From Dicyema japonicum (taxonomy: Eukaryota; Animalia; Dicyemida): a stretch of DNA of 64,000 nucleotides. The stretch spans positions 1,113,653 to 1,177,652 of the forward strand of contig RDEW01000016.1 in assembly GCA_011109175.1 (NCBI GenBank), read 5' to 3'. The translations under genes were made by a program, and so were the position numbers. Shown one piece after another: positions 8,306 to 63,400 of this stretch (position 1 is its first letter; each line of letters starts with the position of its first letter). Below the pieces are notes generated by a model. That model did no database searches, was not told where the DNA came from, and was given only the letters and a program-made list of their open reading frames with translations.

Positions 8306-11300
8306 GTGATGACCTAGAAAAATATAACGTTTCTATTGGCTGTATACAAGAGACGAAAATTACGTACTATCTCGATGAAAACCACGGAAGATATCGTCTA
8401 ATATGTCTACCCAGTGACTCGAAACACTATGGTCTTGGATTCGCCATTCACAGAAAACTATCATCTGACATCAGTCGCATTTGGCGGGTGAATGACAGGA
8501 TCTGCGTAATACAGATCCACCTGAACAATCAATGTTACCCTAGAAATACACTAACGATTATAAATGTATATGCACCACACTATATAAGAGTGGCAAAAAA
8601 CCCGACCGAACTGGATAAATTCTACTCAGCATTATCAAAGACGTATAATGGATATGAGTCGTCCTCACTTATATTCATTGCTGGCGATCTGAATTCTAAA
8701 ATTGGAACAAAAAAGAATTCAGAAGATACCTTCATGGAAGACACGGACGTGGGGAAAGAAACTTGCCTGGACCATACTTGGCCATTTCTGCACGGCAAAC
8801 AAACTGTTCTTGTGCAACACCGCATTCTCTCATCGTGCATGCCACATAACCACTTGGATGGGCGAACGAAGAAACCCAGAAGGAAAATTAGTCCCTATAT
8901 ACAACCAAATTGATTATATTATATGCCGGATCAATGACAAACGCTCTCTTATAAACGCACGCTCATACGAAGGTTCAACAACTGTCAGCGATCACAGAAT
9001 GGTTATTAAATTAAATTAAATTATTAACCCCGGCTTCGCCAGCAAGTGGGAAGCCGGCGACCATCAAAGAGCGTGCAGTCCGGACAGGCCGCTCCCAGAG
9101 ATCCTCGACTTTTGCATCCGGTGGTCCAAGGCAGGGAAAAAGGTCTCGAACTACTCTGCCAGCCAGAAAAGGGTGGTGTCCACACCGTAGGCGAGCCAGT
9201 CCGATTCTGATCTTCCTCGGGAGCGATTGTTCCGTTGGACTGATATCCGGGGGGAAGCGCTCCAAGACTTTGTTATATTGAAGTGTCCTAATGGCCCGTG
9301 TTGAGATAAAATCATGGATTCGGCGGGTCCAAGTTGAGTCTTCTTGAGGGGGGGTGATCTTCGACAAGGCTCTTTGTAGGTCAAAGAGGGTCCTGCGTAT
9401 GTATCTGCGGTTATTGTTACTTAGCAAAGCGTGAACTGGGTGATTCGGGTCGAACGACTGCCGTAGGAATTGTAAATTACGCATTTCCAGGTGGTCATAG
9501 AGCGGGAGGATTTTCGACTCCCAATGTAAATGGTCGGTGGGGGTTGACTTTAAACAGCCAGTTATTATTCTGAGCGCCGAGTTTTGCACTTTCTGCAGTT
9601 CTTGAGAAAGGGACAAGGAGATTGAGGGGGCCCAACTTGGTGAGGCGTAGTTGAGTGTAGTCCTGATGAACTGTTTGTAGAGAAGAGTTAAGTTTTCTTT
9701 TTGCTGACCGTTTGAGTGGCCAGCTACTGCCCGTAATATGTTAAGTTTCCGCTTGGCTTTTGTCATTACTTCCTCCACTTGTCTGTTGAAACAGAGTGAA
9801 GGATCGAAGACAACTCCAAGGATCTTCGGGTATTTATTTAAGGGGAGTGGTTCGTCACCCAACGAGAGTGTGGGGTTTAGGTTGAATTGTCTTCGATCGG
9901 TTGTGAACAGGGTAGCTGATGACTTCGAGGTGGAAACACTCATCCAGTTTAAGTTCATCCAGTCGGATAGCAAGTTCAGGTGGTACTGCACTTTTTCGGT
10001 GGCCAGTCGAACATCGCCACTCCTGGATGCGATTACTAGATCATCGGCATATGTCAATAGTAACGTATTTTGGGTTGTTGGGATGTCTTTGACGTAAAGG
10101 TTGAAAAGTGAGGGTGAAAGGACTGATCCCTGGGGAACACCGTTTGGTAGGAGTCGATATCTTGATAGATTTGAATATAGACACGTATGACCCAGTCTTC
10201 CCGAGAGGAAATTTGTGAGCCATGACTTCCATACAGAGGGAATATTTGAAGAATAGATCTTGTTGCAGAGGACCACACGGGAGATTCTGTCGAAAGCTTT
10301 AGTTAGGTCAATAGAGGCCAAGACAGTTCGTTCCGGGGGTTTGCAGTTGTTGAAACCGTTGGAGATGTATTGGGTTAGTGTCAGTAAGTGCGTGGTGGTC
10401 GAGTGTAAAGGACGGAAACCATGTTGTGAGTCGGAGAGGTCGAGGTAGGGGGTGATTTCGTTAAGAATGATCCTTTCGAGGATTTTTGAGACAACAGATG
10501 TTAAGGAAATTGGCCTGAACGAAGAGGGCAAGGAGGAGGCTTTGTTGTTCTTGAGTATTGGGATAATGTTCGACTTCTTCCATAACATCGGGATGAAACA
10601 CCTGTTGATGGAGAATTCGTAGATATCTTTAAGTGCCAAGAGCCCGTTTGGACCGAGGTGCTTTAGGTGGAATATGCTGATCCGATCGGGTCCCGTGGCT
10701 GGTGAGTTTCTTGAGTTTGTAATGAGGTTTTGAACATGACTTATGATACTTCGAATCGTGCCTTTGTTACCCTTGGGGGTTTAGTAATATGAGGTCGATT
10801 TTCTTTATTCATTGGAATATGACTCATTTTGCAATAGTGAGTCATCAAGTCATTTGCCTGGCAGTGGAAATCTTTCGTTTGGTTGTCCTTTCCAAGTCTA
10901 CCTCCATGGGTTGTGCTCGATTCGGTTTGATTTGATTGTATTTCTCTGATAAATCTCCAGAAACTTTGGGGTTTTGATTTTGGATTCAATCGAGAGACGA
11001 AAGTGGACCACTTCTCCTTTTTGAGCTCCGTAATGAGGTGGGTTATCTTCTTGTTTAGGGAAGAAATTTCATCTTGGAGTTGCTGGTTGGTTGTTCGGGA
11101 ACGTTTTAGGCGTCTTCTCTCACAGATGAGATCCAATATTTCTTTGTTGAAAAATAGTTTGTAATCATGGATGAATCCTTTAGGGACGTGCTTTCTATCC
11201 GCCGAAAGGATGGCTGAGTTGAAATGTGCAATGGCTTTGTCTGGAGAGGTAAAATTATTCACAGAGAAGTTTTCCAGCGACGTTTCGACGTCAACCGTGA

Positions 11301-12050
11301 AGTCGATCCATCTCGCCCTTTTGTAGTTCACATAGGTTCGCCTCGACATAGTTCGTCCGAAATGCAAGAAGATGTCGATCAGAATAGGGTTATGATCTGA
11401 GGGTAAGTCATATCTGACATCCCAGTAGATCGATTTTGCAAGGGGAGCTGAGCATATGGAGAGGTCGGAGACGTGTTAGGATCCCCAGGGCGTGTTCCAC
11501 ATCTCGTGTGTTGGCGGGGGTTATTCAATATCACTAGGTGTTCCAGTTCAGAGATCACTTGTTTCCCTCTGTGGTCCGAATTCTGGTTTCGGAACCATAG
11601 TGGATCTTTAGCGTTTAGATCGCCGCAAATAACTATGTTTTCGTATAGTTGAAGGAATTCTAGGTTTGGTCGGTAACTCTTCTGGCAGCAAGACGAAGGG
11701 GGAATGTAGATATTCAGAATTGTGTAAGGAGTTGACATAATATTGATGGTGATGGATAGCAATTCCATATGTTTATCAGAAGCCGCTGTCAATGTGTGGT
11801 CAGTGGTATCCGTGAATGGGATGGAGTTGTGAATGAGGGTGACCAGGCCACCACCGTGAGATCCATTTGATCGCTCAGAACGGAGCAAAGAGTAGTTTTT
11901 GAATTTTGGTGTTTGGGAGAAGGCAGACAAACGTGACTCCTGTAGAAGGGCAATGTCAATACGGTGTTTAACCAAGTACTCAGCCAATTCGGTATGTTTC
12001 GAGGTGATTCCATTGATGTTAAGTTGTAAGATTCTGATGGGTCTATTCTG

Positions 12051-12077
12051 CGGCCCTGGGTTTAGTTCAATGTCACC
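12051..12077 (-). other. 2A-like ribosomal skipping motif GDIELNPG|P
   Basis: Matches D-V/I-E-x-N-P-G-P consensus, in frame immediately upstream of APE. Confidence 0.85.
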
Positions 12078-12156
12078 GGATGTCAGGAGGGATTCTTGGG
12101 AGCGAAAGCTTCGTGCCCGCTCAATGGTCGCCATCGAGATCTCCTTGAAGAGAGAC

Positions 12157-12245
12157 GATAGGGAAAAGATGTGGTTCTTTTTCATGTGTGCTGTGTAGGG
12201 CACAGGCACAACCAAATGACACCTCTTGGTGAACCACAACGTCAT
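12157..12245 (-). ncRNA. Candidate structured RNA (pseudoknot) at LINE 5' end, copy B
   Basis: P1 ATGAC/GTCAT, P2 TGTGGTTC/GAACCACA, P3 ACC/GGT, P4 hairpin, CATGAAAAA junction, TTTCCCTATC box. Confidence 0.75.
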
Positions 12246-15200
12246 AAAAGCCATGCTTATCCAATAAATGCTTATCAATAACAGAATGGTTATAAAAGCC
12301 ATGCTTATCAATAACAGAATGGTTATTGTCACCTTCAGCCTGGCGAAACATGGTATCAAACATAATAACATTACAAACAATAATAATGAGAATACAAGAA
12401 ATGGATACGCAACGGGAAAACTGATCTCTCATCCAGACACAGTCAAAAATTACCAAAAACACATCTGCTCTCATCTGAAGGACCAAACAGTAGGAATTTC
12501 ATGAATCACACAAAGTATATAATAAACGAAGCAGCAAGCCAGTACCTCGGCACACGGGAGATGGTCAGTAAGGGTCGGACGACACATACAGAACTAGTAA
12601 AGGAATTAGCAAAGGAGTTAAAAGAAATCCATACAAAAAAACTAAACGAAAAAGACTATAACAAGAGAAAAGTCCTTCAGGGGCAGAGGGACCAAATCCG
12701 TAGAAAAATCAAGAGACTGAACAAGACACTCCACCAAGAAGAACTTCTTCGCAAAATCAATGAGGTATCCAAACTAAAGGATAACTCACAAATGTACATG
12801 GCCGTTCGTTTACTACGCAACACAAACCGGAAAGAACGAATAATCATCAAAGATAAAAATTGCAAGACATTAATGAATACTGAAGAGCAAGCGGAGTAAT
12901 TGCAACACATTTGAGAAACTTTTTAATGTGACTACAGCAATCCCCCCATTCAAAGGAAAGCCTAGACTTAAAAGAACCAATTTCAATTTTGGAAGTAAAA
13001 ACAGCATGTCAAAAACTAAAAAATAACAGAAGCCCTGGACCAGATACGATAAACCCAGAATTACTGAAATACGGGCCTGACCCCCATTTTGAAAAAATCG
13101 CTACACTACTAAATGAAATGTTTTCAACTAACTAAACCTTGCCCCTATGAACGGGATTACTAATACCTATACAAAAACCCAATAAACCCAAAGGACCGAT
13201 GAAAACTTACGACTAATTATATTATCAAATTCTCTACGGAAAGTCTTAGCTAACATTGTATTGGAACGAATAAAAGGACCCGCCTATGAATACCTACCCG
13301 AAAGTCTGGAGTCACAGATGGAGATGTGCAACACATCAAAGATATTGCAATGCCATCCACATTCTGGGAATAGATCTATCAAAAGCCTTTGATTCGGTTA
13401 ACCGGAAAAAATTGATGACAGTGCTGGAAGTGTTTATTGACGAATCGAGTCTAAGAATGATTCAAATCCTTCTATCTAAAACAGAACTCATTGTGAGAGT
13501 TGGAAAAACCTACTCAAAAAAATTTGAAACAAACACAGGCACTCCTCAAGGAGACTCCCTCTCCCCTACTATTCACAATATACTTGGAGGCCGCTATGAA
13601 GGAACTGAGACCATTATATCAAGGAAAAATAGAAGTGATTTATGCTGATGATGTCGACCTAATTTCTGAAGACAAAGAACTGGAGCATGTACTAGAAAAA
13701 GCACCAGATATACTTGGGAAATGGTTTCTCACCGTGAACAGGGAAAAAACAGAACGGACAGAGATAAGACGAATGAACAACTCACTCGAAGAAAAATGGA
13801 GACACATAAAGAAACTTGGCTCTCTACTAGGAGATAGCGAAGACATCATATGGAGAAAAACATTAGCAAATGCGGCATTACAAAGGATGAAAAATCTTAA
13901 GCTAAAACGGAAAGGATATAACATAAAACAAAGGATTATGTTATACGACACCTTCATCAAACCAATTCTACTATACAACTCTAGGACCTGGGTTACCTCT
14001 AAAGAGGAATTGGGAGGCTAGACTCATTTCACAGGAATCATCTAAGAAACATAACTGGAATGTCCTGGCCATCCAAGATCTCGCGGAATGGACTGTACAA
14101 TAAGTGTGACTGTATACCATTAAGCCACGAGATCATTAGCTCTCGTTGGAGACTTTTTGGACACGTCCTGAGGTTGGACTCGATACCCCCTCCGAATATC
14201 GCAATGGAAGATTACCTGGTGACGATCTGGACTCACTGAGGGACCTAGCAAAGAACAGAAGAGCTTGGAGCAACCTAACTAATTCTCTTATATTTTTTGC
14301 TGCACATGCGGGGCTATAAATATTATGGCTCTCGTGATAGTGCAAATAATAATAATCGAGGTTTTTAGTCTTGTCCATTTTCATGACAATCCTTCCAAAT
14401 GATCTAAAAACGAGGTGAGGTTATCTCCGAATCGAGGTCGAGCTGTATAACGATTTTGAATATCTATTGGACAGAATACAGTCTCATATGTTGGGGTTTG
14501 TTAGAGAATTTAGTTCGGGTGAAATCTATCAGCGTGGTTAAATGAGCAAAAGTTGAGCGTTCTGTTTTTAACCTGTGCTGAAATACATGTAGTTGATTTC
14601 TTGAATAGGCTCTATATACTGCTATTCTAACAGAGAATGTACTAACAAATCTTTCTTTTAATTTCATTAATGTTCCCTAAATTTATGTTTATTGTAGGGG
14701 ATCATACATAATTTATTCTGAAACTGATATCGATATATGAATGATAGACGAAGGACGTACTGTTGAAGCGTTCTGCTTGTTTATAAGTCATAATTATCAA
14801 ATTGAGTGAGGAAAAAACCCAACTCATTTACTACCAAAAGCCTGAAAGTGTGAGTTTGCCAGGCTCAAAAAAGAGACGAATTGAGACAAATACATGAATT
14901 CACTTTAGTTCATTGAATATTACTATTTCTTTAGTTTTTCAGTCTCAAATTAATGGAACGAAAATTTTTCGTATTGGACATGCTTCATCATGTGACCTAT
15001 GACATTATGACAAATGGCATTTATAGCTACCATTTTTAAGATTGTTAGATGCTATAAATTGCCCTATTGATGACTTATAATCCTGGTTTACACATTATTG
15101 AATTATTTATTCAAATTGGGATAAATCTTAGCTTGTTATCAAAAATGAATAAGTAAAATTAAAATCTTTGAAATAAGCGATTAGTAAAGTTAATGATGGA

Positions 15201-15247: not shown

Positions 15248-17635
15248 TCAAAATGATTTTAAAAAATCTAGACTAGGGAATAAATGACGTTTTCTGTAAA
15301 TTTAGATAAAATGATTAACTTTTTGTAAATGTAAACTCCAACAGCAATTAGTCCAGCCGCTATAACAGCAAAGAATAATCCAACTCCCAGAGCTACGCTA
15401 TTCGACTTTTTAGCTACAAATTAAATAAAATTTAAACAGGCAGAGATGTTACCAGTAGAGGCTAAATTGTTAGGTAAAATAGAAACAGCGTGACAACGTT
15501 TGAGTGGTAGTTGATGGTTGAGTTGTTGTGGTCGTCGTAGCTGTGGAAGTCGAAGTGGTCGTTGAAGATATTTTTGAAGTTGTTGAAGTCATTGTTGGAA
15601 CGTCTAAAACACTCAATTAAAAAACATACAATCTCCGACGCAAATAGCGACCTTTTTATTTTTGCATGAATCAGTAATCCATGTTTTATTGGGAAGTATA
15701 GCAACGCATGAAACTAAAAAGTCGATGATTTTTGGTTCGCCGGGAGCCCAGTTTGGTGTGTTCTATAATAAATAAATAACGAGACAGATGGGGTATTATC
15801 CAACCAAGTTGACTTTGTGCCATTCCACAAAATTCTATAGTCTATGTGAAATGTAGAATTAATAAGATCTTCGAAATATTCAAAAACAATTACAATTGTC
15901 GATTTGGTTAAATGTATAAGAATCTGTCTCTTTTATGAGAGTCTGCCCATAATACGCGCAAAGTCTAGTAGAATCGTGATAGCTAAGAGGACGTCCAAAT
16001 AAGGAATATACAGAAGAACCAAGAGTAAAAGAATATGCTGTTTTAGGTTTTTCTAAACATTATTAAACCACAGACCATAAAAATTAGTTGAACAATTAAT
16101 AGTCGAAGGTTCACCTCTGTAGATTTCACGACAGGCAAAGGTTGAGGGTTTGCAAACATCGTTTTTCCATTTCCCAGAGTCGTATTGAGCATAAACACAT
16201 CCTTTATCACTGTTAGAATTAGGATATCCGGAAGCCCAGTTTGTGTATCTCTAAAATAACTATTATAGTAACATCTTTAAATCCATCCCCTCGAACCAAT
16301 ACTTTTTTAACATAAATTATTCCGTAATTCAAACCAATCGTGAATTCGGAATTTTCTTAAGTAAATATTTTTAATAACCCATCACTGCACAATTTTCTAA
16401 ACTGTTACGGGGAACAAAAAGAACGTCACCACGACGACTGCACAGAGTTTTCGCTTCTTTCTGAGTTTGTATAAAATCAAATATTCTAATAGAATACGTT
16501 TCATATTTAATTATCTGGGCAAAGTAATCTCAAATGATATTAAATGTTTACTGTGTTTTCTTTCATTGGTACAATTAGCAGGAACAGCATCCTTAACCAC
16601 AGTATCTAAGGAATCATACTCTAATGTACCTGTTTCACAGATAATATTATTTTCTGCTGTACAATCTTGTGTGCTGAATTCACCAGTTAGGTGACTCCTA
16701 ATAACACAAAGTTCTTTTTGTGGGTGACCAGGTAACCACGGAAGATATGACTGCTTGTAATTTTAACGTATAACCGCATGATATCCTTTAACAGTAATGT
16801 ACTCATTATTCATGTTTCTAATTCCTGTATAAACAAATCCGTGATTTTCAGCTACAAGTAAATATTAGTTTTAACTATTAATAGCACAGTTTTCTAGTCC
16901 ATCGTTAGGAATGAAAACATATCCATTGTGATCATTTTTGCAGATTCGAGAGATATGCTCGTAATCACGACTGACCTTATAAATGTAATACGAGTGTCCT
17001 CTGAATGTGAGAATATCATCGTATTTGACTGAAAAAATATCACATAGTACTATTTATAATTTTATCCGTCGTAATGTTGATTCCGATTGCTGAGATAGAA
17101 TCTATTATGATATTTTTGATAAATTACCATTCTCGCACATGTACAAGGATCGATACAAGCGGGTTATACCTTTCCATTTTCCATTGACAGCACTTATCAT
17201 GGCGCTAGTGTCCTCATATACAAGTCCTGGTTCAAAATTAGTGTATGTCTACATATCATTGTATATTACGAGTATTTTTTCGGTATGAAGTGAGTAAAAT
17301 TGATCATCACCAGTTTTTCTGCCAATACCGATTATACGATCATTTTTCAGTAAACCTTAAAATTTAAATTTAAAAATAAACTAAAAATAAAATTATTTTC
17401 TTTGCCATCCTGAATGTCCACAGCATAGTGATCATTAAAGCCGCATACATAATCCGCCCATAACGCATGTACATTCATCGGACCCAAAAAATATGAGTGA
17501 TTATTGTAGTTGAAAATTCGCGAGTATGGGGCACCTTAAGATATGACATATGGAATTACCAGAAGTCAAGAAAAAAAATAGGAATCCTAAAATCAATTAA
17601 AATTTTATCAAACCGACTAAAAAGTTGAAAAGCAT
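15248..17635 (-). CDS. Type I membrane protein with four C-type lectin-like domains, Thr/Ser stalk, TM (paralog A, apparently intact, ~19 introns)
   Basis: Manual splicing of 21-39 nt GT-AG introns gives an open frame: signal peptide MLFNFLVGFLFFFLTSG, CTLD motifs (TNWASGYP..CV..GKWKNDVC..FAC; NWAPGEP..C..W...C..C), TTTSTS stalk, TM VALGVGLFFAVIAAGLIAVGVYIY. Confidence 0.88.
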
Positions 17636-17819
17636 TTTGCCAGTTTAATTGTATGCCAATTTATATATTCAAAGAAAGCCAAAAATTTGATTTGCGGTCT
17701 TTTATTATTTTAATTTTATTCGATAATCGTGACAGACGTGATAGGATTTTACCTTGATTGATTTTTGAACAAATAGAAATTAAGAGTCAACAATTAAATG
17801 AATTTATAAGCCTGATTGC

Positions 17820-22680: not shown

Positions 22681-22900
22681 AGTGCCGCACGTGTGAAAAT
22701 ATAACAATTATAAATCTACAATAGTTGCCTATAATAATGATGGCTTGCTAAAACAAAAGGTAACCGCAACTTCGTAAAATGAGAAGGTAGATAAGAAGAT
22801 AGGTTATATATTATTTTGTGGTAAAATACTAAAACATAGCTTGTTAAAAATAGAAAAATGAATAGAATCGAATAAGTATTAGTGAAATGAGATAGTAAAT

Positions 22901-25332
22901 TTAATGGTCAAAACTTCGGGCTAAAAAATTTAAATAATAAAGAAACTTCGGAAGCTACCAAATGACCTCAAAGATAATGGAGCTGAAAATGAATAACCTC
23001 TTCTGTAAATTTAAAGAAAATGATTAACTTTTTGTAAATGTAAACTCCAACAGCAATTAGTCCAGCCGCTATGACAGCAAAGAATAATCCAACTCCCAGA
23101 GCTACGCTATTCGACTTTTTAGCTGCAAATTAAATAAAATTTAAACAGGCAGAGATGCTACCAGTAGAAGCTAAATAGTTAGGTAAAATAGAAACAGCTT
23201 GACGACGTTTGAGTGGTAGTGACAGTCGAGGGTTGAGTTGTTGTGGTCGTCGTAGTTGTGGAAGTCGACGTGGTAGTTGAAGAAATTTTTGAAGTTGTTG
23301 AAGTCATTGTTGGAACGTCTTTATCATTCAAAAAAAAACTATCTCCGACGCAAACAGCGACTTTTGTATTTTTGCATGAATCAGTAATCCATGTTTGATT
23401 GGGAAGTATAGCAACGCATGAAATTAAGAAGTCGTCACTTTTTGGTTCACCGGGAGCCCAGTTTGGTGTGTTCTATAATAAATAAATAACGACACAGATG
23501 GGGTATTATCCAACCAAGTAAACTTTGTGTCATTCCACAAAATTCTATAGTCTATGTGAAAGCTAACATTTATGAGATCTATGGTTAATCAAAACATTTA
23601 CATTTATTGATTTTTTCGAATGTATAAGAGTCTGTATCTTTTATGAGTGTCTGCCCATAATAAGCGCAAAGTCTAGCAGAATCGTGAAAGCCGAGAAGAC
23701 CACCGAATAAGGAATATACAGAAGAACCAAGAGTAAAAGAATATGCGGTTATAGGTTTTTCTAAAAATTATTAAGCCACAAACCATAATAATCAGTTGAA
23801 CAATTTATAGTCGATGGTCTACCTCTGTTGTTTTCACGACATGCAAAGGTTGAGGGTTTGCAAACATCGTTTTTCCACTTCCCAGAGTCGTATTGAGCAT
23901 AAACACATTCTTTATCACTGTTAGAATCAGGATATCCGGAAGCCCAGTTTGTGTATTTCTAAAATAACTATTATAGTAACATTTTTATTTCCATCCTCGA
24001 ACAAATAAATGTTTAACATAAAATACTCCGTAATTCAAACCAATCGTAAATTCGGAATTTTCTTAAAATAAATATTTTAATAACCCATCACTGCACAATT
24101 TTCTAAACTGTTACTGGGAACAAAAAGAACGTCACCACGACGACTGCACAGGGTTTTTGCTTCTGTCTGATTTGCTTCAAAATCAAATATTCTTATAGAA
24201 TATGTTTCATATTGTATTATTTGGGCAAAGTATCCTAAAATGGTATCCTACCGTTACTTTGTTTTCTCTCATAGCTACAATTAGCAGGAACAGCATCCTT
24301 AACCACAGTATCTAGGAATCATACTCTAGTAGACCTGTTTCACAGATAATATGCTTTTTGCTGTACACTCTTGTGTCTTGAATTCTCCATTTATGTGACT
24401 TCGAATTACACAAAGTTCTTTTCGTGGATAACCAGGTAACCACGGAAGATATGACTGCTTGTAATTTTAAAGTATAACCGCTTGATATCCTTTAACAGTC
24501 ATGAATTTTTTTATATTTGTGATTCCAACATAAATAAAACCATGATTTTTGGCTATGAATTACTATTTATTTGAACAATTTATAGCGCAGTTTTCTAATC
24601 CGTCGTTTGGGATGAAAATATATCCGTTGTGGTCATTTTTACAGATTTGAAGGATATTTTCGTAATCCCGATATACCTTATAAATGTAATACGAGTGTCC
24701 TCTGAATGTGAGCAAATCATCGTATTTGACTATAAATTATGTCACATAGTACTATTAATAAATTTATCCCCTGTAACGTTGACTCCGTTTGATGAGATAG
24801 AATCTATTATGACATTTTTGATAACCATCTCGCATATGTATAAGTATGGATACCATCGGGATACACCAGTCCATTTTCCATTAACCTCATTTATTAGCGC
24901 TCTAGTGTTGTAATATCCAGGTTTTGAACCAAAATTATTGTATGACTACATATTATTGTATAATACGAGTTTTTTGTCAGTATGGAGAGTGGAATATTCA
25001 TTATCCCCATAATATTTCCCAATGCCGATTAAACGATCATTTCTCAGAACACCTTAAAATTAATATTATAATCTATACTGAAAATAACTTTATTTTCTTC
25101 GCTATCTTGAATATCCACAGAATAGTGTTTATCATAGCCGCAGACTTCATCTAACCAGTATCCATATGCTGTTCTTGAAGAAAAGTAATATGAGTGATTA
25201 TTGTAGTTGAAAATTTGGGAGTATGAGGCACCTTAATGTAAGACTTATGAGATTACCAGAAGTCAAGAAACATAGTAGGAATCCTAAAATCAATTTAAAT
25301 TATATCAAACCGACTAAAAAGTTGAAAATCAT
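22901..25332 (-). pseudogene. Four-CTLD membrane receptor paralog B (frameshifted)
   Basis: Nearly identical to paralog C over ~2.57 kb but with -1 (~24830), -1 (~24359) and -2 (~23995) indels relative to A and C. Confidence 0.75.
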
Positions 25333-25659
25333 TTGTCAGTTTAATTGTATGCCAATTTATATATTCAAAGAAAGCCAAAAATTTGATTGTGGTCTAAATT
25401 GCAAAACATTTGCTTTTGTTTTGATTCAGCTAAAATTAAGAAAACTGTTTAATATATTTAAAAAAATACTATTTTTGTATTTTCTGATATTGTAAGCAAT
25501 TTCACAAACTGTCTTTCTGTTGGAAATTTTCAAAGAAAATCTTGAGTCTCAAGATATGAACATTTTCTACGAAACCAAAGTAAAAGATTTTAGTATATTT
25601 AATAGTTATGCGACACAACCAGTTGTAGGTAATCATGTTTTAGCCTCCAGCAGTTTGTC

Positions 25660-38815: not shown

Positions 38816-39657
38816 TTAGAGTCACATCAAATCAAAATACACTTGACCCTCTCAAATTGGCCTCATTTTGAAAACTTTTCTTTGAAAAAATCCTATTCCC
38901 CTTATTAATTTGCCAATTTTTAATTTAATTTTTAATAAAATTGTAAAAAAATGACCATTTACTCACTTCTTTCATAAATAAAAAAGTATTATTCAACAAT
39001 TTCCCCTTTTGACCGGATTGGGTATACAGCCAATTTTAATAAAATTTTCTGTTTTTATGCTCGAAATTTATTAGATTGATTTCGTAGATAAAACCAACTT
39101 TTCCAACTCTATAATAAATGCATTTAAAAAACTCAAAATAGCTTCGGTCAAGTTACTTTTGCATAAATTTTCTACACTTTTCATAGAAGTAAAACGATGT
39201 CCTATACCATCAAAGCAAGTTTTGTAAAATTTACTGTTCAACTTATGCAAGGAAAAAACATATTCGACTAAACATCAGTGACCTCTTTGATCCTAGAGTC
39301 GGTGAATGGAATGAGAAAATCAGATTTTTTACAGTAGCACCTGTGAAATACTAATAAAAATGATAAACCTGCTAGTTTGAAATATTTCGTATACAAAAAA
39401 TTCAATAAAAAGATGTTAGAAAATTCGTGAGTTGTAAGAAAATTCACCAGACGTTTTCTAATAACATTCTTAAGCTTTTCAATGACCCTCCTTATTTGAT
39501 TGCGGCATAACAGTTGATGGACACGTATTTTATTCAAAATCTCTAAAAATTAATAAATTAAAAATCAATAAAAATTTTGACTTTTTTTGACTTCATAACT
39601 TTTGATTTATATAAAATTTTGGATTAAAAATCACATTTTTATTAGTTTTTGAATTTC

Positions 39658-39730
39658 ATGCCGTGTGACTCGCCTATATGGTGGCATCGCTCACTTGAAG
39701 TGTTGGAAAAGAGTCGCAAACTTCCTATCC
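39658..39730 (+). ncRNA. Candidate structured RNA (pseudoknot) at LINE 5' end, copy E
   Basis: P1 ATGCC/GGCAT, P2 TGTGACTC/GAGTCGCA, P3 GCC/GGT, P4 CACT/AGTG, TTGGAAAA junction, CTTCCTATCC box. Confidence 0.75.
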
Positions 39731-39737
39731 CACAACC

Positions 39738-39803
39738 ATGGACGCGGGATGGTGTCGACTCCTACTTCTTTCCTTTGGAGATGTCGAAGAAAATCCTGGA
39801 CCA
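39738..39803 (+). other. N-terminal 2A-like peptide MDAGWCRLLLLSFGDVEENPG|P
   Basis: ATG in strong context (ACCATGG), full DVExNPGP consensus, in frame with APE start. Confidence 0.85.
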
Positions 39804-42239
39804 GATCTAGTCATATTACTAATTAACATCAATGGTATCCGAACAAAAATTGCCGAACTACAACGCTTTCTCATAAAACACTAAGTGGATATAGTCACTC
39901 TTTTAAGAGACGGAACTTAACCCACGGCGACCAACTCCGAACCTTCCGGAATACTCTGTTTTAGACAAGACAGAGGTCATGGAAAGGGAGGAGGCCTTAT
40001 TTCTCTACTCAGGAAGCATATAATGGTCGGAAATATCTCGGACGACATCCCGGACCCATCCCGCCAGGACGACACACTGGAACATCTAACTCTAAGAATA
40101 TGTCTACCCTCTATCCGATTGACAGTTATCAATATGTACATACTCCCTCCACCGTCATGCCCCAGCGGCTACAGCCCCGAACTCAAGCGATTCACCAGGT
40201 TAGAAAACACGCTAATTGGCGGTGACCTAAATGCGAAGAGTTCTCAATGGTATGCTGACCAACAACTGGACCAACGGGGAGCCCTCATATCCGACAGTTT
40301 TGACGACTTGATCATTCTCAATAATCCAAGCAAACACACAAGGTCCCCTTCCCGTCGAGGCGACTCCTCTACTTCACCAGACATTTCTTTTGCTGCCCCT
40401 TTTTTTGCGGCTGTTATTTCATGGGATGTTATATACGATACCGACCATAACCCGATCTTCATGAGGATCCAACAAAAACATAAGTTAATGAACACTCCAA
40501 GAACCAATGTGAACTTCACAAAGGCAATGTGCCTTCACACATTTTACCGAACTACACCTCCAGACCTTCCGGATAGAGAACTTAGGATCTATCGACGCTG
40601 CTGTCAAAACCTCAACGAGATTATACTCCGAGCTCGCAAAAGATACATTCCGATGAGTCGTCCTCAACGTCCATCACACCCAATTGATGCTGAAACGCGT
40701 GATCTAATCCAAACGAGAAATAAGCTGAAGAATTTCGAAAGACAATCAGTGGACGTAACTGAAAGAATATCAAAACTGAACAAAGAAATCACGCGGAACA
40801 TCACAAAACACAACAAAGAACGTTGGGAAGCCTTGCTCAGAAAAGCTACGAATAATGCTTCCCCCACTGTATTATTGAAGTTGATAAAGAGGCTCAAGAG
40901 TACTCTCCAGATATAATTGACATCAAGAGCTATATCCAAATCCCAATGACATCATGAAGTACTATGTGAATATTAGTCATAAACCATATTCAATGACCTG
41001 GATGTTCGTTCTGGCAATGGTCGAAGGAATAAATGTCCCAACATGACTTTCTTCGACCCTTCAACGGTGCACTCAGTAATCAGCAAAATGAATAACTCGT
41101 CGTCCCGCGGTTCAGATGACATCTCTATTCTCGAACTAAAACACCTGGGTCCTTTTCGCGACGGCCGCAATAACAAAAATTTTCGACCTCTCAATAAACG
41201 AGAACAAGATTCCGTAAATATGAAAGAAATCTCTGATACACCCATCCTGAAGAAAAACAAACTGCCCGTCCTCCTACCGCCCGGTATCCATCATCTGCGC
41301 CTTATCACGAGTGTTAGAAAAACTGGTCCTTCTCAAGATCCGTCATTTCATAACTTTACCATCTTTTCAACACGGATTCCGCGAAGGACACTCAACAACA
41401 ACTCATCTAACAAAACTGGTTCAATTCATTTCGGACGGCCTGAATACCCAAAATTTACACGAGAAAACCGTGCTAGTCTTAGTGGATGTGGAGAAGGCTT
41501 TTCACTCAGTATCTCGGAAGATCCTTACACAAAAATTTTTACGACGTCGATCCACCCTAAATTCAAGTCATGGTTGGCTAACTTCATCGGCAGTCGAATG
41601 GGGCAAACAACCAAAAATCAAAACCGCGATACCTTCCAAATGGAGTTCCACAAGGATCACCGTTGTCTCCAATGCTTTTCAACATGTTCATCACCGACCT
41701 ACCATCCTTAACCACCAAAAACACAATTCTTCTATTGCATGCGGTTGATATCGTGGTCGCAGTGAAACATCGAAGAATCGAGGAGGCGACACGATCCGTG
41801 CAACACTTACTAAACCAGATGGGTCTTTGGTTCCTGAGAACCGTTTGAATATATCACCAGGAAAGTCACATGTAATGACGTTTACCTCAGCACGATAAGA
41901 TCTATGGGCAACACCACGAATAAAATTGTATGATTCTCCGCTTTCCATTAAGAAGACCCTTTCAATCCTTGTAGTCATCCTGGATTTCCTACTCACATTT
42001 ACCCATCAAGTGGACCTAGTAGCCCCGAGGATCCAAAAGAAAATTGGAATTCTCAAGGCTTTCACTCACTCTCCAGTATCTTCCCGCCCATCGTTAGAGC
42101 TTCTATACAAACAATTTGTTCTACCTAGTATCGAGTACGCCTGTGCTGCATGGATTGCCCCCTTATCAATATTGGCACAGAGCAAGCTGAAGGTTTTACA
42201 AAATCTATTTCTCAGGATTCTATTGAGATCGTCTTAAAA

Positions 42240-43480
42240 GGGAGTGCGGAAAAAAAGTAAAGTCGTCTTTTTTAGTTTATATCGTATTTTTATAGCATTA
42301 ATAGCATCTTTTAATTTTTAATATTTTTTTCAACACTTGACTTTTTTTCCATTTGACTTTTTTCCAATTATCTTAAATTTTCGCTTATAAATTTTCGAAA
42401 TTTAGCGCAAATCGGAAAAAAAAGTCAAGTCTGTGATATCGTTAGCGGACTAGACTTTTTTTCCCGTTTGGTATAATCGCTTTGACTAAATCAATTTAAG
42501 AATTTCAAGGTAATAATAAAATTGACTTGACTTTGGTTCGCTTTGGTTTAATCTTTTTGACTTGATATACGGATTCAAGGTTATAATTATGCTTGCCGCA
42601 AAAATAAGAGACAAAATGGAGATAATATCAACTAAAAAAGAGGAAAGAAAATTTGTTTTAAGCGTTGTATGTATACAAAGCGCTCGGTGACAAAAAACTA
42701 CATAATTTTTAAATGGGTGAAAAATCTTCACAAGGATGCAGAGGACACATAAGAATAGATCATAATTTTGGATTTCCCAAAGAAGGAATCTCTCACAATC
42801 ACGAATTTAACGAAAGTCAAATAAAACTGATGAAATTGTGCAGCAAGGCAAAACTTATTGCTAAAACGAGTCAAGAAATCCCTTACAAATCTATTCAAAA
42901 GTTGTGTCTCAATGTGAAACAACAACCAGAATTATCTCCTTCTGCAGATTCTTTTAAGTGAACACTAAGGAATCAACGCTTGTCTCTACATATTCCAAAA
43001 AATATTTTCGATCTCGGAGATATTCCATCGTCTTTATCTTTAATCCTTGGTCCAGATTCAGAAATTTTTTTAATTTATGATAATCATAGAAGAACCGATA
43101 GAATATTAATATTCAGCACCAAAACTAATTTAACGTTATTGGCGAATTCAAAATCATGGTATATGGATGAAAATTTCTCTATGGCACATTTTATCAGGAT
43201 TCAGTTCAATGCCAGTGCAATTACAGTTGTTTATGGAATATTACCTTCTAAATCACGATAGATTTACGAAGAATTTTTTGAGGCTATTCAAATGCAATTC
43301 ATAATTTGAATTTGGAATTTTGTCTTGAAACTATTATGGCAGACTTTGAAGATTCGGTATTTCGAGCTGTCCTTGCAGTATTTGGGAGACGAATACATAT
43401 TAGGGGATGTTATTATCATCTAAGACAGTCAACTTGGAGAAAAATTCAAGAATTGCATCTAGTAAAACAAATCTAGTAAA
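42240..43480 (+). mobile_element. MULE transposon fragment
   Basis: Terminus GGGAGTGCGGAAAAAAAGT with AAAAAAGTCAA/TTGACTTTTTT subterminal repeats; ILIFSTKTNL..SWYMD, DFEDSVFRAV..GCYYHLRQSTWRKIQ. Confidence 0.75.
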
Positions 43481-46350: not shown

Positions 46351-46785
46351 TGGCACACTCTTCTTCTAAAAGAAGAATAGGGATTACCATCAATCTGGAT
46401 TAAAATCCACTTAATTAGTTGATTTACTCGTTAATTTTCAATCATAAGATAAATTTAATTTAACTCATTAATAAAATGACCCTTCAATTAAAATGGCATT
46501 TTATAGAAAAAATTGTTATAATTTTGAATCATAAATTTGTTTCTTGGTTTAACTTTATTAATATTTGATTAGTTTTTGGGTTTGATGGCAAATAAAATTC
46601 TCTGTTTGGTTCACTAATGTATCATTGATGGCTTTTAAAGCAGAAGGTTAGCCACTTCGTAAAATGAGAAGGTAGATAAGAAAATAGTTTATATATTATT
46701 TTGTGGTAAAATACTAAAACATAGCTTGTTAAAGATAGAAAAATGAATAGAATCGAATAAGTATTAGTGAAATGAGATAGTAAAT

Positions 46786-49225
46786 TTAATGGTCAAAACT
46801 TCGGGCTAAAAAATTTAAATAATAAAGAAACTTCGGAAGCTACCAAATGACCTCAAAGATAATGGAGCTGAAAATGAATAACCTCTTCTGTAAATTTAAA
46901 GAAAATGATTAACTTTTTGTAAATGTAAACTCCAACAGCAATTAGTCCAGCCGCTATGACAGCAAAGAATAATACAACTCCCAGAGCTACGCTATTCGAC
47001 TTTTTAGCTGCAAATTAAATAAAATTTAAACAGGCAGAGATGCTACCAGTAGAAGCTAAATAGTTAGGTAAAATAGAAACAGCTTGACGACGTTTGGATG
47101 GTAGTGACAGTCGAGGGTTGAGTTGTTGTGGTCGTCGTAGTTGTGGAAGTCGACGTGGTAGTTGAAGATATTTTTGAAGTTGTTGAAGTCATTGTTGGAA
47201 CGTCTTTATCATTCAAAAAAAAACTATCTCCGACGCAAACAGCGACTTTTGTATTTTTGCATGAATCAGTAATCCATGTTTGATTGGGAAGTATAGCAAC
47301 GCATGAAATTAAAAAGTCGTCACTTTTTGGTTCACCGGGAGCCCAGTTTGGTGTGTTCTATAATAAATAAATAACGACACAGATGGGGTATTATCCAACC
47401 AAGTAAACTTTGTGTCATTCCACAAAATTCTATAGTCTATGTGAAAGCTAACATTTATGAGATCTATGGTTAATCAAAACATTTACATTTATTGATTTTT
47501 TCGAATGTATAAGAGTCTGTATCTTTTATGAGTGTCAGGCCATAATAAGCGCAAAGTCTAGCAGAATCGTGAAAGCCGAGAAGACCACCGAATAAGGAAT
47601 ATACAGAAGAACCAAGAGTAAAAGAATATGCGGTTATAGGTTTCTCTAAAAATTATTAAGCCACAAACCATAATAATCAGTTGAACAATTTATAGTCGAT
47701 GGTCTACCTCTGTTGTTTTCACGACATGCAAAGGTTGAGGGTTTGCAAACATCGTTTTTCCACTTCCCAGAGTCGTATTGAGCATAAACACATTCTTTAT
47801 CACTGTTAGAATCAGGATATCCGGAAGCCCAGTTTGTGTATTTCTAAAATAACTATTATAGTAACATCTTTAAATCCATCACCTCGAACCAATAAATGTT
47901 TAACATAAAATACTCCGTAATTCAAACCAATCGTAAATTCGGAATTTTCTTAAAATAAATATTCTAATAACCCATCACTGCACAATTTTCTAAACTGTTA
48001 CGGGGAACAAATAGAACGTCACCACGACGACTGCACAGGGTTTTTGCTTCTGTCTGATTTGCTTCAAAATCAAATATTCTTATAGAATATGTTTCATATT
48101 GTATTATTTGGGCAAAGTATCCTAAAATGATATCCTACCGTTACTTTGTTTTCTCTCATAGCTACAATTAGCAGGAACAGCATCCTTAACCACAGTATCT
48201 AGGAATCATACTCTAGTAGACCTGTTTCACAGATAATATGCTTTTTCGCTGTACACTCTTGTGTCTTGAATTCTCCATGTATGTGACTTCGAATTACACA
48301 AAGTTCTTTTTGTGGTTGACCTGGTAACCACGGAAGATATGACTGCCTGTAATTTTAAAGTATAACCGCTTGATATCCTTTAACAGTCATGAATGTTTGT
48401 TTTATATTTGTGATTCCAACATAAATAAAACCATGATTTTTGGCTATGAATTACTATTTATTTGAACAATTTATAGCGCAGTTTTCTAATCCGTCGTTTG
48501 GGATGAAAATATATCCGTTGTGGTCATTTTTACAGATTTGAAGGATATTTTCGTAATCCCGATATACCTTATAAATGTAATACGAGTGTCCTCTGAATGT
48601 GAGCAAATCATCGTATTTGACTATAAATTATGTCACATAGTACTATTAATAAATTTATCCCCTGTAACGTTGACTCCGTTTGATGAGATAGAATCTATTA
48701 TGACATTTTTGATAACCATCTTCGCATATGTATAAGTATTGATACCATTGGGATACACCAGTCCATTTTCCATTAACCTCATTTATCAGTGCTCTAGTGT
48801 TGTAATATCCAGGTTTTGAACCAAAATTATTGTATGACTACATATTATTGTATAATACGAGTTTTTTGTCAGTATGGAGAGTGGAATATTCATTATACCC
48901 ATAATACTTCCCAATGCCGATTAAACGATTATTTCTGAGAAAACCTTAAAATTTAATATTATAATCTATACTGAAAATTACTTTATTCTCCTCGCTATCT
49001 TGAATATCCACAGAATAGTGTTTATCATAGCCGCAGACATTATCTAACCAGTATCCATTTGTTGTTCTTGAAGAAAAGTAATATGAGTGATTATTGTAGT
49101 TGAAAATTTGGGAGTATGAGGCACCTTAATGTAAGACTTATGAGATTACCAGAAATCAAGAAACATAGTAGGAATCCTAAAATCAATTTAAATTATATCA
49201 AACCGACTAAAAAGTTGAAAATCAT
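46786..49225 (-). CDS. Four-CTLD membrane receptor paralog C (apparently intact)
   Basis: Manual splicing of the same micro-intron set gives an uninterrupted frame from MIFNFLVGFLLCFLISG to the TM and tail RRGYSFSAPLSLRSF. Confidence 0.88.
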
Positions 49226-50419
49226 TTTTGTCAAATTACCGATAATTAATTTATATGGACAAAAAAGATAATATTTAATTTGCGGTTCATAATGAAATAG
49301 CATTTCCCTTTGTTCTATTAACTTCGTATTCATTAAAAAAACCCATAAATTGATGAATTGATAATTGTTTTCCTTTGTTGGGTTAAATAATTTCATTTCT
49401 TTATTACTCACGATCCCTTAAATGATGGAAACGGACGATTAATCTCAGTATTCTTGAATCTAAACCAAAGGCGCGGTTTTGCAGGGAAGCTCCCAGCAGA
49501 CTAGGACAAGAGAAAAGGCGATCATCTTTTATCGCTAATCATACTGAATAGCGCAGTCACACATCTGATTGCCCGATGCTTTTTCATAAGTAATGCAAGA
49601 TGATTTTCACGTTAAAATACAATTCTGTTTTGGCTATTTTTGACTTTAACATTTATTTTATCTCAAATTTATCTCGAATGTGACTGCTAATTTTTGTCAT
49701 TCATTTGAATATTGAGTAGCTTATTATTATTTTTCGACACGTGATAGGCTATTTTTATATTCTCATTAAAATTCGCCCACACCTAAATCCACCTAGTTTT
49801 GTCTATTGTGCTTAAATAATTTTCATAGACCAGAAAATGTACCACCCGCTTGATATTATGGTTTAGTAATAACTACAAACACAAGAGAAGAGGTTTGCTC
49901 TACTCAATCCAAAATGAAGTAAACATTTAATGATGTTATTGGAAGTTATGTAATTTCTCTTTAAATATGATTTATCTTGTAAAATTTTAGAAATTTTTCT
50001 CTGTCATTTTGCTTTAAGACTTGTCATTACCCCCTCATAATACAGATGTTCCTGACTTATCCACAACGTCCACCCTCACAAAAGGAAAGACAAGATTTTT
50101 CATCCTTCATGAAGCTAAGTGAAGATTTCGTGCATTAAAAATACGTCACCACCCAAACCATTAGAATGATTAACTGGACTTGAAACCCATCTACTTTATG
50201 GTCCTCAGAAATAAGCCTATGAGTGGTTGTTTCCATAGATACGCGTGGGTAATTTGAATATTGTTAAAAAGTCATTTCTTTTGTCAAACAAAATTAATTT
50301 ATACTGCGGTTTCGGATACAATCACTCTCTCCTTATGGAATGGAAATTTAAAAAATATATTAAAGGCCTTGTGAAACCTTATTTGAATTTATGACAAAAA
50401 TTTGAAGATTTTGAATATT

Positions 50420-60436: not shown

Positions 60437-63400
60437 GATTACGACGGTTAATATCTTTTGATTTTGAATGGGGCCTTAGTTATAGAAAAATCCCCATTTT
60501 TAGCTTCTCTGATTATGTCCTCTACGACATTATTCATAACCTTTTCCAGCATCAGAACTAATCCATTATTCGAATATAATTTTTTGACATTCTACATAAC
60601 ACTTGATATTACTTTCTGATCATTTGAACTATCCTCCATAGCCAATTGCTGAAAAGTTGTAATTGGCTCGTTTTGAATATCGGAGATTAGCTGAAAGAAG
60701 TTGCTTTCACTCATAATACATCTTTCCCCTAATCCTTTGACTCTACCTTATCACAGCAGAAAGAATCGGCAAAATCGTATCCTTTGCTGAAGTCGTCCAC
60801 TCAATGTCTCTTTTCTTTACATCCAAAACTGAACTGAATTTGTTAGTATAACACTCACTTGAAGTAAAGCCACGAATTTATTTTGTGAGGAAATCTTCTC
60901 TCATATTCGATAATCCCCATCGTTCGGTGGGTTAATCTTACGTTTATTTTCCGCACGTCGGGAGGACTGGGTTTTTCGAAATTGGGGAGAATCGGCTTTT
61001 CTTTGAGTTTCATTCTCGATTTTTTCTGGTAATCAATTATAAGGGAAACCATAAAGTTTTTGTCGATTCTTTCGTTTTCGTGGACTCCAATGGATACGTT
61101 CTATTTGAAATAAAGCGGTTACCCTCCCTCCAATAACAGACTCACCTTGGATTATAAATTCCTCCTGATTTCGTTTAACGTTCATTTCGTATTTTTTTAA
61201 ATCCTTACAGTACTTGAGGTACTCTATTCTGTCAGTAATATTGAGGGTGAGGTTAATTTCGTTCAAAATTGCGATATTCTTTGATTTAATTTCAACCATA
61301 AAGACTAGCTTTCCCTTAGGCTTTAGTTTCCCCTCCGACGGAGTTATTTTTAGGACCTCGAGTAACGGAAAAGACTACATTTTGGTCGAAATTCCATAAA
61401 AACATAATTCTGTTTGTATCAGAATTATTTTCAAGAAAAACCAATCTCCTCACCACAGAGTTCACTGGGACGATTCCCACACGAATGTGTTCCGGAGATA
61501 AGCAAACATCCTACAATATAAAAGCTACGAAACCTGATTCGTTGAATTTAAAGGGAATAGACTGGGTACTCCAAAATCTCCGTTTTCGCATGAAATTGCC
61601 ACCGTGTTGTTCATTATTCGTTCGTCGTACCCCACACCAATAAGCCGTGTCACATAATCAGAAGAATCGTTAACGCAAATTGAAATATTGGTCTGCTGCT
61701 TAGAAACCTAATACTGTGTATTTCCTTGCTTCCAAGGGGGAAAAGACCCACCTTAGCATGCAGCTTGAGAATGGAGGAATAGCTCCTTCGGGATTCAAAC
61801 ATTTGAAAACCGGATAATCAAAATACTCCTACAATTATTTGTAAATTACATTTTCGAGTTCTTTAATTATTTCACTGTTAACTTGATAATAGCACGAGTG
61901 AGATCCCCCGTTGAGAATTTCCATGAGTTGTACTGTGGAATCAATTGACCCGATCGGGATTGGAACAAACTGGAAGGATTTCGGAATGCAAGGTAAAGCC
62001 ACGTGTTCTGCAGGGAAGGTTGTCCCAAAAAGATCGATCTATTGTAAAAATTTTCACAAACAAAAAGTTCCCTTCCTTTGTCAATTTTGAGCATCAACGG
62101 AATTTTATGGAAACCCAACGAAAGGTGGTTAAAGTTAAATGTGATTGTCTTGCATTCGTTTGGCAAAAGAATCCCCGACTTTGGTGATACTGTGAGTAAT
62201 CCATTTTCCACGTCGGTAATCTGACATTATACCAGGCAAAACCAGTTTAAGTTCTTGTTGTGTAAAATTGTAAGTATCCGCCCAAAGTTCTGGTTCTATT
62301 TTAAGATCTCTTGGAAAGTAAAGGGACCTTGGATGATGCAAAAGTCAACCATTGGCAATCGAGAACTCCCGGATTGTGAATATCTAGTTGTACCACGGAT
62401 GGATCACCATTTATGGTATTTCCTAGAATATCGAATACAATTCGAGAAGAATCATTAAACTCCACTGTGGGGAAACAGCTGCTTTTATGAAGGATTGAAG
62501 ACTTGTACTCACTTTCCTCGGGACTGATTCTGAGCTGCTCGTTAAAACTTGGATTATTTGACCAGACAAACTCGTGGATCGAAAAAATCATCCATAAAGA
62601 TTTTTTTGTCACATTTGGGAGCAAACTGAGTCCTCGAATATCGGAGACTTGCATGAATGGGTAAGAAACTGATGACTCAAAGTTACATAGAAAATGGAGT
62701 TGGTCATCTTGAGCCAATCCATAAAGATTCTTAAATTTGTAGTATAATTCGAATTTGTAACTCCCAAATGATTTTGCCGCGAATTTTACTTTCAAGAGTT
62801 GACTGCTATGGGGGGTTATACAATTGTCGTAGAAACTCAAACTCACAACTAAAATTTTAATTGGAAACAACAGTAATCTTCATCCTTCAATTTCTTTATC
62901 ATCAATTCATATCCAAATTCACAGTCTCCGTTATTTTCCAGGAGTACGTCACACGTGGTAGATTCATTCATGGAGACTGCTGGAAGTTTATACAAATCCC
63001 GATTACTCTAGAATGTGCATTAAACATTGTACAGTCAATTCTGAGTCACATCCTTCCCCCATCAAGTGAATCTTTTTGACGTACTTTGAGTCGGGGATTA
63101 CAGTATTGTCTTTGGAAATGCAGTAGAATTTGATGTATTTTTCAATTTTTGAGGATCCGGGGATTCGGGGGGTAAAATAAGATTCAAGTGGGATTGTTTG
63201 GTGAGGGAGAATAAATCCAGTAGAAGGGGAAAATTTAAAGTTAGTGCTTTCGAAATTGTCATAATCAATCACAAATCTGTTGACTTATAAGATTACTTTA
63301 ATGTTGATGACGTCACATTCTGGATTTCCAATGTTTTTGAGTTTATTCCCATTCTGAATGTTGGTGGGAAGACAATGGTGTTTGATTTTAGCACAACGTT

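Follow-up and report, generated by a model that had tools for sequence, protein, structure and literature searches.

An HDV-like pseudoknot, probably a drifted ribozyme, at the 5' head of 2A-bearing Ingi/Vingi-like LINEs of an octopus lineage

The window analyzed here, a 64,000-nt stretch of contig RDEW01000016.1 (assembly GCA_011109175.1), contains LINE A on the forward and LINE B on the reverse strand, whose ORFs are broken by stops, marking both as dead copies (Table 1). Their domain order is a 2A peptide, the motif ILxxNINGI, Exo_endo_phos and then RVT_1, the reverse transcriptase being seen in B; an RNase H domain was not found in the element. The 2A peptide thus lies directly ahead of the AP endonuclease, the reverse transcriptase follows, and there is no ORF1. 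A 2A peptide ahead of the endonuclease without ORF1 is the organization of L1Tc, Ingi and the mollusc element Ingi-1_AC (PMC3708506), and the LINEs are best read as Ingi/Vingi-like with a single ORF, an assignment made by organization. LINE B measures ~3.2 kb, ends in an (AATTT)n-like tail and is bounded by a clean target-site duplication of 14 nt, AATAACCATTCTGT, at 12327-12314 and again at 9007-8994; its 2A peptide is DIELNPGP (12074-12051, -). The nearest protein, 'uncharacterized protein LOC115229065 [Octopus sinensis]', lies on a contig of GCA_006345805.1. An AT-rich, very high-copy repeat with a TTGACTTTTTT motif occurs on both sides of LINE A (39523-39645 and 42330-42560), its contig word depth exceeding that of LINE A itself, and a repeat of 2.4-2.6 kb is present three times at 85-98% identity (15279-17700, 22738-25334 and 46626-49227).

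Table 1. Features of the LINE heads in the window and of related folds in environmental contigs
Feature	Position	Strand	Evidence or remark
Candidate target-site duplication GAATTTC	39651-39657	+	Abuts P1 of copy A
P1 5' strand, ATGCC	39658-39662	+	Direct reading; an HDV-type cut would fall 5' of 39658
P2 5' strand, TGTGACTC	39664-39671	+	Direct reading, covariation
P3 (GCC/GGT) and L3 (TATAT)	39672-39682	+	Direct reading
P1 3' strand, GGCAT	39683-39687	+	Direct reading, covariation
J1/4 (CG) and short P4 hairpin	39688-39702	+	CACT (39692-95) pairs with AGTG (39699-702)
J4/2, TTGGAAAA, 8 nt, no cytosine	39703-39710	+	Direct reading
P2 3' strand, GAGTCGCA	39711-39718	+	Direct reading, covariation
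Pyrimidine-rich tail motif, AACTTCCTATCC	39719-39730	+	Common to B, C, L005 and L017
2A 'stop-go' peptide DVEENPGP, start of LINE ORF	39780-39803	+	ORF reading
Decayed body of LINE A	39804-42499	+	Endonuclease remnant 40023-40916; stops soon after 2A; AT-rich 3' tail
LINE B	8994-12327	-	Three ORF pieces hold the 2A, endonuclease and reverse transcriptase
Copy B, fold and tail motif	12245-12156	-	Helices 12245-12170; direct reading, model match
Copy C	21589-21505	-	P2 intact; single mismatch in P1; 2A downstream decayed
Copy D, as claimed	55826-55747	-	P2 and tail motif only; unsupported
Strong HDV-order folds in environmental contigs	L009:191-262, L039:121-200, L007:39-137, L017:48-117, L002:386-440		2A and endonuclease, often a PHD finger

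The 73-base stretch at 39658-39730 is the front end of LINE A, and a fold of the HDV family can be drawn on it by direct reading. The helices described in the original prediction were reproduced exactly at 39658-39718 (+), and the fold does begin where the AT-rich flank stops, at 39657. A single G separates the 5' strand of P1 from P2, a helix of 8 bp (TGTGACTC/GAGTCGCA) that includes one G-U pair. Copy A was compared with related contigs that are contig-type runs of one sample with DNA-like behavior. Nearly all of these carry TACGT in L3 in place of TATAT (39677 T>C, 39678 A>G). The L3 of copy A is unable to form P1.1, whereas the majority TACGT could pair 2 bp with the CG of J1/4; in other copies P1.1 amounts to weak, non-conserved pairs at most. 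Contig depth is higher over 39646-39727 than over 39728-39768.

Copy B has the same helices with different letters: P1 is ATGAC/GTCAT, P2 is TGTGGTTC/GAACCACA and P3 is ACC/GGT, with a P4 longer than in A and C-AUGAAAAA as J4/2. The compensatory changes between A and B that had been noted in P1, P2 and P3 are real on direct reading. Two further copies had been claimed, at 21.5 and 55.8 kb, and only the former stands, with a broken P1. This copy C belongs to the same family as L001, a copy from O. sinensis whose P1 is intact (GCGTC/GGCGC); the P1 of C (GCGTC/GGCAC) contains one A-C mismatch, a CpG-to-CpA change relative to L001, and there is a 3-nt insert after P3. The two have TTTAGCG(C/T)G-GCGTC-A-TG(T/C)GGTTCAC in common. 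Copy D was rejected, scoring 3.4 bits with the covariance model and requiring P1 and P3 to use the same GG. Two other matches to covariance models, both without P1, were treated as chance: 62390-62468 (+), at E=0.1 falling to E=2.8 with a second model, and 61061-61132 (+), which stays at E=0.18-0.6.

Just upstream of P1 in copy A, the T-run at 39654-39657 is complementary over 4 bp to the A-run of J4/2 (39706-39709). The same complementarity spans 4-5 bp in B (12250-12246/12182-12178, -) and 7 bp in L001 (1986-1992/2049-2055), and is not conserved in C. The match may reflect an alternative pairing, or may have arisen by chance in DNA this rich in A and T.

Ribozymes of the HDV family have a P1 of ~6-7 bp (PMC3774820), a J4/2 that opens with the catalytic cytosine (C-N-R-A) and a P1.1 of 1-2 bp between L3 and J1/4. 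The nested double pseudoknot with the order P1, P2, P3, P3', P1', P4, P2' is present in A, B, L001 and C, and the same strand order in six related loci described below (L007, L009, L017, L039, L002 and L025). P1 adjoins P3/L3 as in the HDV-like fold, and is 5 bp long in A, B and L001. J4/2 in the octopus heads is 6-9 nt long and reads (C/U)(A/U)UG(R)AAA, or C-UAAAAA in L001, an excess of 3-5 nt over HDV, CPEB3 and the relatives with C-A-A. A catalytic cytosine within C-N-R-A is lacking from the octopus copies: B and L001 have a J4/2 C at 6-9 nt from P2; one can be drawn in copy C, but in the best P4 drawing it pairs within P4, leaving UGGAAA; and A and D have U at this position and no C. In R2 ribozymes the catalytic C is invariant, as are four further positions, and P1 is usually 6-7 bp; that of the active jewel wasp R2 ribozyme is 4 bp (PMC3774820). 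This precedent would cover the short P1 of the octopus heads, though not their missing or displaced C. Comparison with Rfam, suggested along with the original prediction, gave no match at the gathering threshold, none at E<=10 across the surrounding 400 nt, and none at E<=1 on 20 related loci. Since the near-canonical relatives fail likewise, the models are too narrow and the lack of a match says little.

An HMMER search with the N-terminal region of B gave 4030 matches, and NPGP is carried by 75 of the 151 proteins examined (the 150 best of the 4030 matches and P0001). The analysis covered contigs for several of these proteins and 80 metagenome loci. For the 16 related loci with a 2A peptide and at least 150 nt upstream, the best HDV-order fold within 330 nt of the 2A was set against 200 shuffles. 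The fold was reached by none of the shuffles in L007, L009, L017 and L025, by one in L002 and by 13 in L039; for the window's own heads the counts were 8/200 (A) and 3/200 (B). By the same criteria no acceptable fold was found in L003, L006, L011, L014, L020, L023 and L026, some of which may lack 5' ends; L005 has the tail motif and likewise no acceptable fold. The folds of the six relatives have a P1 of 6-8 bp and a P2 of 6-7 bp, and in five of them (L007, L009, L017, L039 and L002) J4/2 is CAA(A/U)N directly after P4. L009 and L039 have P2 (TGTTGCC) and J4/2 (CAAAU) in common, yet their P1 helices are wholly different while still paired (GGTACG/CGTACC and GCTCCC/GGGAGT).

Two elements connect these loci to the octopus heads: P3 ACC/GGT is common to B, L001, L009 and L017, and the tail ACTTCC to A, B, C, L005 and L017. 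In longer form, ACTTCC(C/T)TAYC lies directly 3' of P2 at 39719-39730, 12169-12156 (-) and L017:118-127, and the motif also occurs at L005:268-279. From the geometry, the P3 sequence and the tail motif, the octopus heads and the metagenomic folds appear to be of one origin. Four elements of the original prediction stand, namely the HDV order of helices, the association with LINE 5' ends, the shortness of P1 and the departure of J4/2 from the canonical form. The proposal of a new ribozyme class does not: related 2A-LINEs have the same geometry with a longer P1 and a C-A-A J4/2.

Topology alone is near chance. A scan of both strands of the window (HDV order, P1 of at least 5 bp, P2 of at least 6 bp and P3 of 3 bp) returned 127 folds at the score of A or better, against ~100 in composition-matched shuffles, and nested minimum-free-energy folds are weakly better than shuffles (z -0.9 to -2.8). 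What makes the fold real is its position ahead of the 2A peptide, endonuclease and reverse transcriptase, the compensatory changes, and the recovery of held-out copies by covariance models. With the 5' halves of A, B, L001 and C aligned by MAFFT, pairing is seen in 94% of P1 and P3 cells and drops to 21-76% when the partners are slid. Three of the five P1 pairs have changed on both sides, and the covariation score of P1 and P3 in these four copies was reached by 13/500 shuffles. For P2 and P3, 94% of cells are paired against 33-51% when slid, with the score reached by 3/500 shuffles, in a model alignment that follows the structure by construction and has a doubtful row among its sequences. A covariance model built from A and L001 finds the held-out C at E=1e-5, and one built from A, L001 and C finds the held-out B at E=0.016, the best non-training match in 128 kb. 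Covariation lies above the slid and shuffled controls. The octopus group in these comparisons comprises three or four independent sequences, and there are few LINE ORFs in protein collections. Full-length heads of B and of the metagenomic families were misaligned by MAFFT, and cross-family covariation was tabulated by hand. The leader peptides across the fold are MPCDSPIWWH in A and MTLWFTKRCH in B; that these differ while the pairing is kept points to conservation at the RNA level.

The claim that the fold defines the 5' end of the element fits A and L007 and fails in B, L001 and C, and the evidence for P1 as the RNA 5' end is mixed. In LINE A, a second GAATTTC follows the AATTTAA-type tail at 42500-42506; with only 7 nt this candidate duplication is weak evidence. 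One contig of a related copy starts at 39659 and another diverges from the window upstream of 39654. L007 starts at P1, right after a (TA)n flank. The duplication abutting P1 in A and the start of L007 would fit an RNA beginning at P1, as cleavage would give. LINE B has a complex 5' junction (12246-12327, -): P1 is separated from the 5' duplication by 68 nt, which hold a second copy of the AATAACCATTCTGT duplication and two copies of TATTGATAAGCAT. L001 and C have TTTAGCG(C/T)G in common upstream of P1 (9-10 nt). Bases kept upstream of the predicted cut suggest that the template RNAs of B, L001 and C were not cut there.

The folds of A and B sit ~120-170 nt ahead of the 2A peptide, and in B, L001, L009, L007, L002 and L025 the 2A-bearing ORF runs uninterrupted, without a change of frame, across the fold. 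This ORF has an ATG at P1 nt 1 in copy B, matching the frame of the 2A, and one at J1/2 in L001. An AUG also occurs within J4/2 in B, C, L007, L009, L017 and L039; since B and L009 are the only loci where it shares the frame of the 2A, a role as universal start codon was rejected. Any short peptide encoded by the head would be set free by the 2A.

LINE 5' ends with HDV-like ribozymes have been on record since 2009-2011 for the R1, R2, R4, RTE, LOA and Ingi (L1Tc) clades, those of the non-LTR retrotransposons R2, R4, RTE and LOA reportedly from the work of Ruminski et al. in 2011 (as cited in PMC5786205). With this group the octopus heads share the helix order, the position at the LINE 5' end, a variable P4 and, in some copies, an ORF that is open through the ribozyme without an obvious start codon; the 4-bp jewel wasp helix shows that a short P1 is naturally tolerated in R2. 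R2 ribozymes keep the C, the LINE clade is another, and the elements here carry a 2A peptide. The resemblance to HDV, CPEB3 and the HDV-like families of Rfam lies in the nested double pseudoknot P1-P2-P3-P1'-P4-P2', the 3-bp P3 and the A-rich J4/2 beside P2, whereas P1 is 5 and not 7 bp, J4/2 is not C-N-R-A, and no Rfam model matches.

A parallel is drawn with L1TcRz (Pr77), an HDV-like ribozyme formed by the first 77 nt of Trypanosoma cruzi L1Tc and ingi-clade elements (PMC3185411, PMC4035085, PMC3383444). Both are HDV-type folds of ~75 nt at the very front of a single-ORF APE LINE whose ORF starts with 2A, and the weak P1.1 of 1-2 bp in L1TcRz would have a counterpart in octopus heads with the majority L3; the L1TcRz head is shared with non-autonomous derivatives, and one of the LINE protein relatives found here is named 'Tcoingi protein-like'. 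L1TcRz cleaves in vitro, whereas the octopus motif is known here from its sequence. Compared by description, the octopus heads further differ in the 5-bp P1, the J4/2 of 6-9 nt and a C that is not conserved; unlike L1Tc, the element has a cephalopod host, is Vingi-sized at ~3.2 kb and shows no RNase H domain. A further likeness, by description and length, is to the head of Vingi-2_Gav, nt 2-74 of which recur in the body of SINE2-1_AMi, as described from sequence similarity (PMC5786205). Vingi heads are discrete modules of ~74 nt at the extreme 5' end that move into non-autonomous elements, and the 73-nt motif matches them in length. The literature searched included no report pairing HDV-like ribozymes with octopus and no description of a metazoan group of 2A-bearing Ingi/Vingi-like LINEs with an HDV-type head.

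In the reading favored here, the octopus heads probably descend, with drift, from a LINE ribozyme of the HDV-like kind. Self-cleavage would have weakened or disappeared in the octopus lineage, the fold would persist as a 5' module of structural or translational use, and copy A would be a relic. The presence of stronger HDV-type folds at the same place in related 2A-LINEs points to a drifted, ordinary LINE ribozyme and not to a new class. The stretch would then be the 5' head of a dead Ingi/Vingi-like LINE that encoded 2A, AP endonuclease and reverse transcriptase in one ORF, its RNA folding as an HDV-like nested double pseudoknot by descent from such a ribozyme. Related LINEs have a near-canonical fold, which would free the element RNA from read-through transcripts by a cut at P1 nt 1. 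Among the octopus lineages, compensatory change would have held the helices while the core drifted (P1 of 5 bp, J4/2 of 6-9 nt, a variable C). With its shortened stem and altered catalytic loop, the octopus version probably cuts poorly or not at all. The retained head may protect the RNA 5' end, be recognized by the element's own protein, or place the translation start of a short leader that is later separated from the enzyme by the 2A. Copy A itself is an inactive relic: its J4/2 lacks C, its L3 has decayed and its ORF is broken.

Other explanations account for part of these observations. Pairing by chance, or as a by-product of a conserved leader peptide, is highly improbable. Such topologies do occur in the window at close to chance frequency, their minimum-free-energy z-scores are weak, and the fold region lies within the ORF in B and L001; but chance would not give independent families the fold at a matching position before the 2A (empirical P <0.005 to 0.04 per locus) or allow models to recover held-out copies, and a by-product of the peptide would not conserve helices where the peptides are not conserved. 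A further suggestion is that the conserved block works chiefly as DNA, in the manner of Pr77, being an internal promoter or initiator for which the pairing is secondary. In L1Tc, the initial 77 nt serve as promoter and as ribozyme (PMC3383444), SINEs reuse the opening ~74 nt of Vingi LINEs as a module (PMC5786205), and the pyrimidine-rich tail after P2 is conserved. Double compensatory changes in P1 and P2, and a P1 that is wholly different yet paired in L009 and L039, are left unexplained by a promoter, which makes this very unlikely as the main function.

It is possible, although on balance somewhat unlikely, that the heads belong to a still-active HDV-like ribozyme with an unusual core, whose master copies cut at P1 and so define the 5' end of the LINE RNA, the copies seen here having decayed. 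The candidate duplication abutting P1 of A, the related contig beginning at 39659 and the start of L007 would all be expected from such cutting. The J4/2 C of B and L001, drawable in C, and the 2-bp P1.1 open to the family-majority L3 would supply parts of a catalytic core, and the R2 ribozyme with a 4-bp P1 is active (PMC3774820). Against cleavage in the octopus lineage are the 68 nt between duplication and P1 in B, the upstream bases common to L001 and C, the U that A and D carry where others have C, with no J4/2 C in A, and a J4/2 that is 3-5 nt longer than in HDV, CPEB3 and the C-A-A relatives. An unlikely variant is that the octopus heads are a functional, non-canonical HDV offshoot, either a ribozyme without the standard J4/2 cytosine or a non-cutting fold serving as a cap-independent translation start or protein handle; take-over of a non-cutting fold in the latter way would explain its upkeep by covariation in LINEs.

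With descent from an HDV-like LINE ribozyme as the preferred reading, the locus adds a metazoan group of 2A-bearing Ingi/Vingi-like LINEs with an HDV-type head, and within it an octopus sub-lineage in which the helices are maintained and the catalytic loop has drifted. A third addition is the placement of the fold within a reading frame that the 2A peptide closes off. Should the drifted form prove functional, nature would here have turned a ribozyme fold to structural or translational use, and this could also account for the reuse of Vingi-type 5' heads in SINEs.
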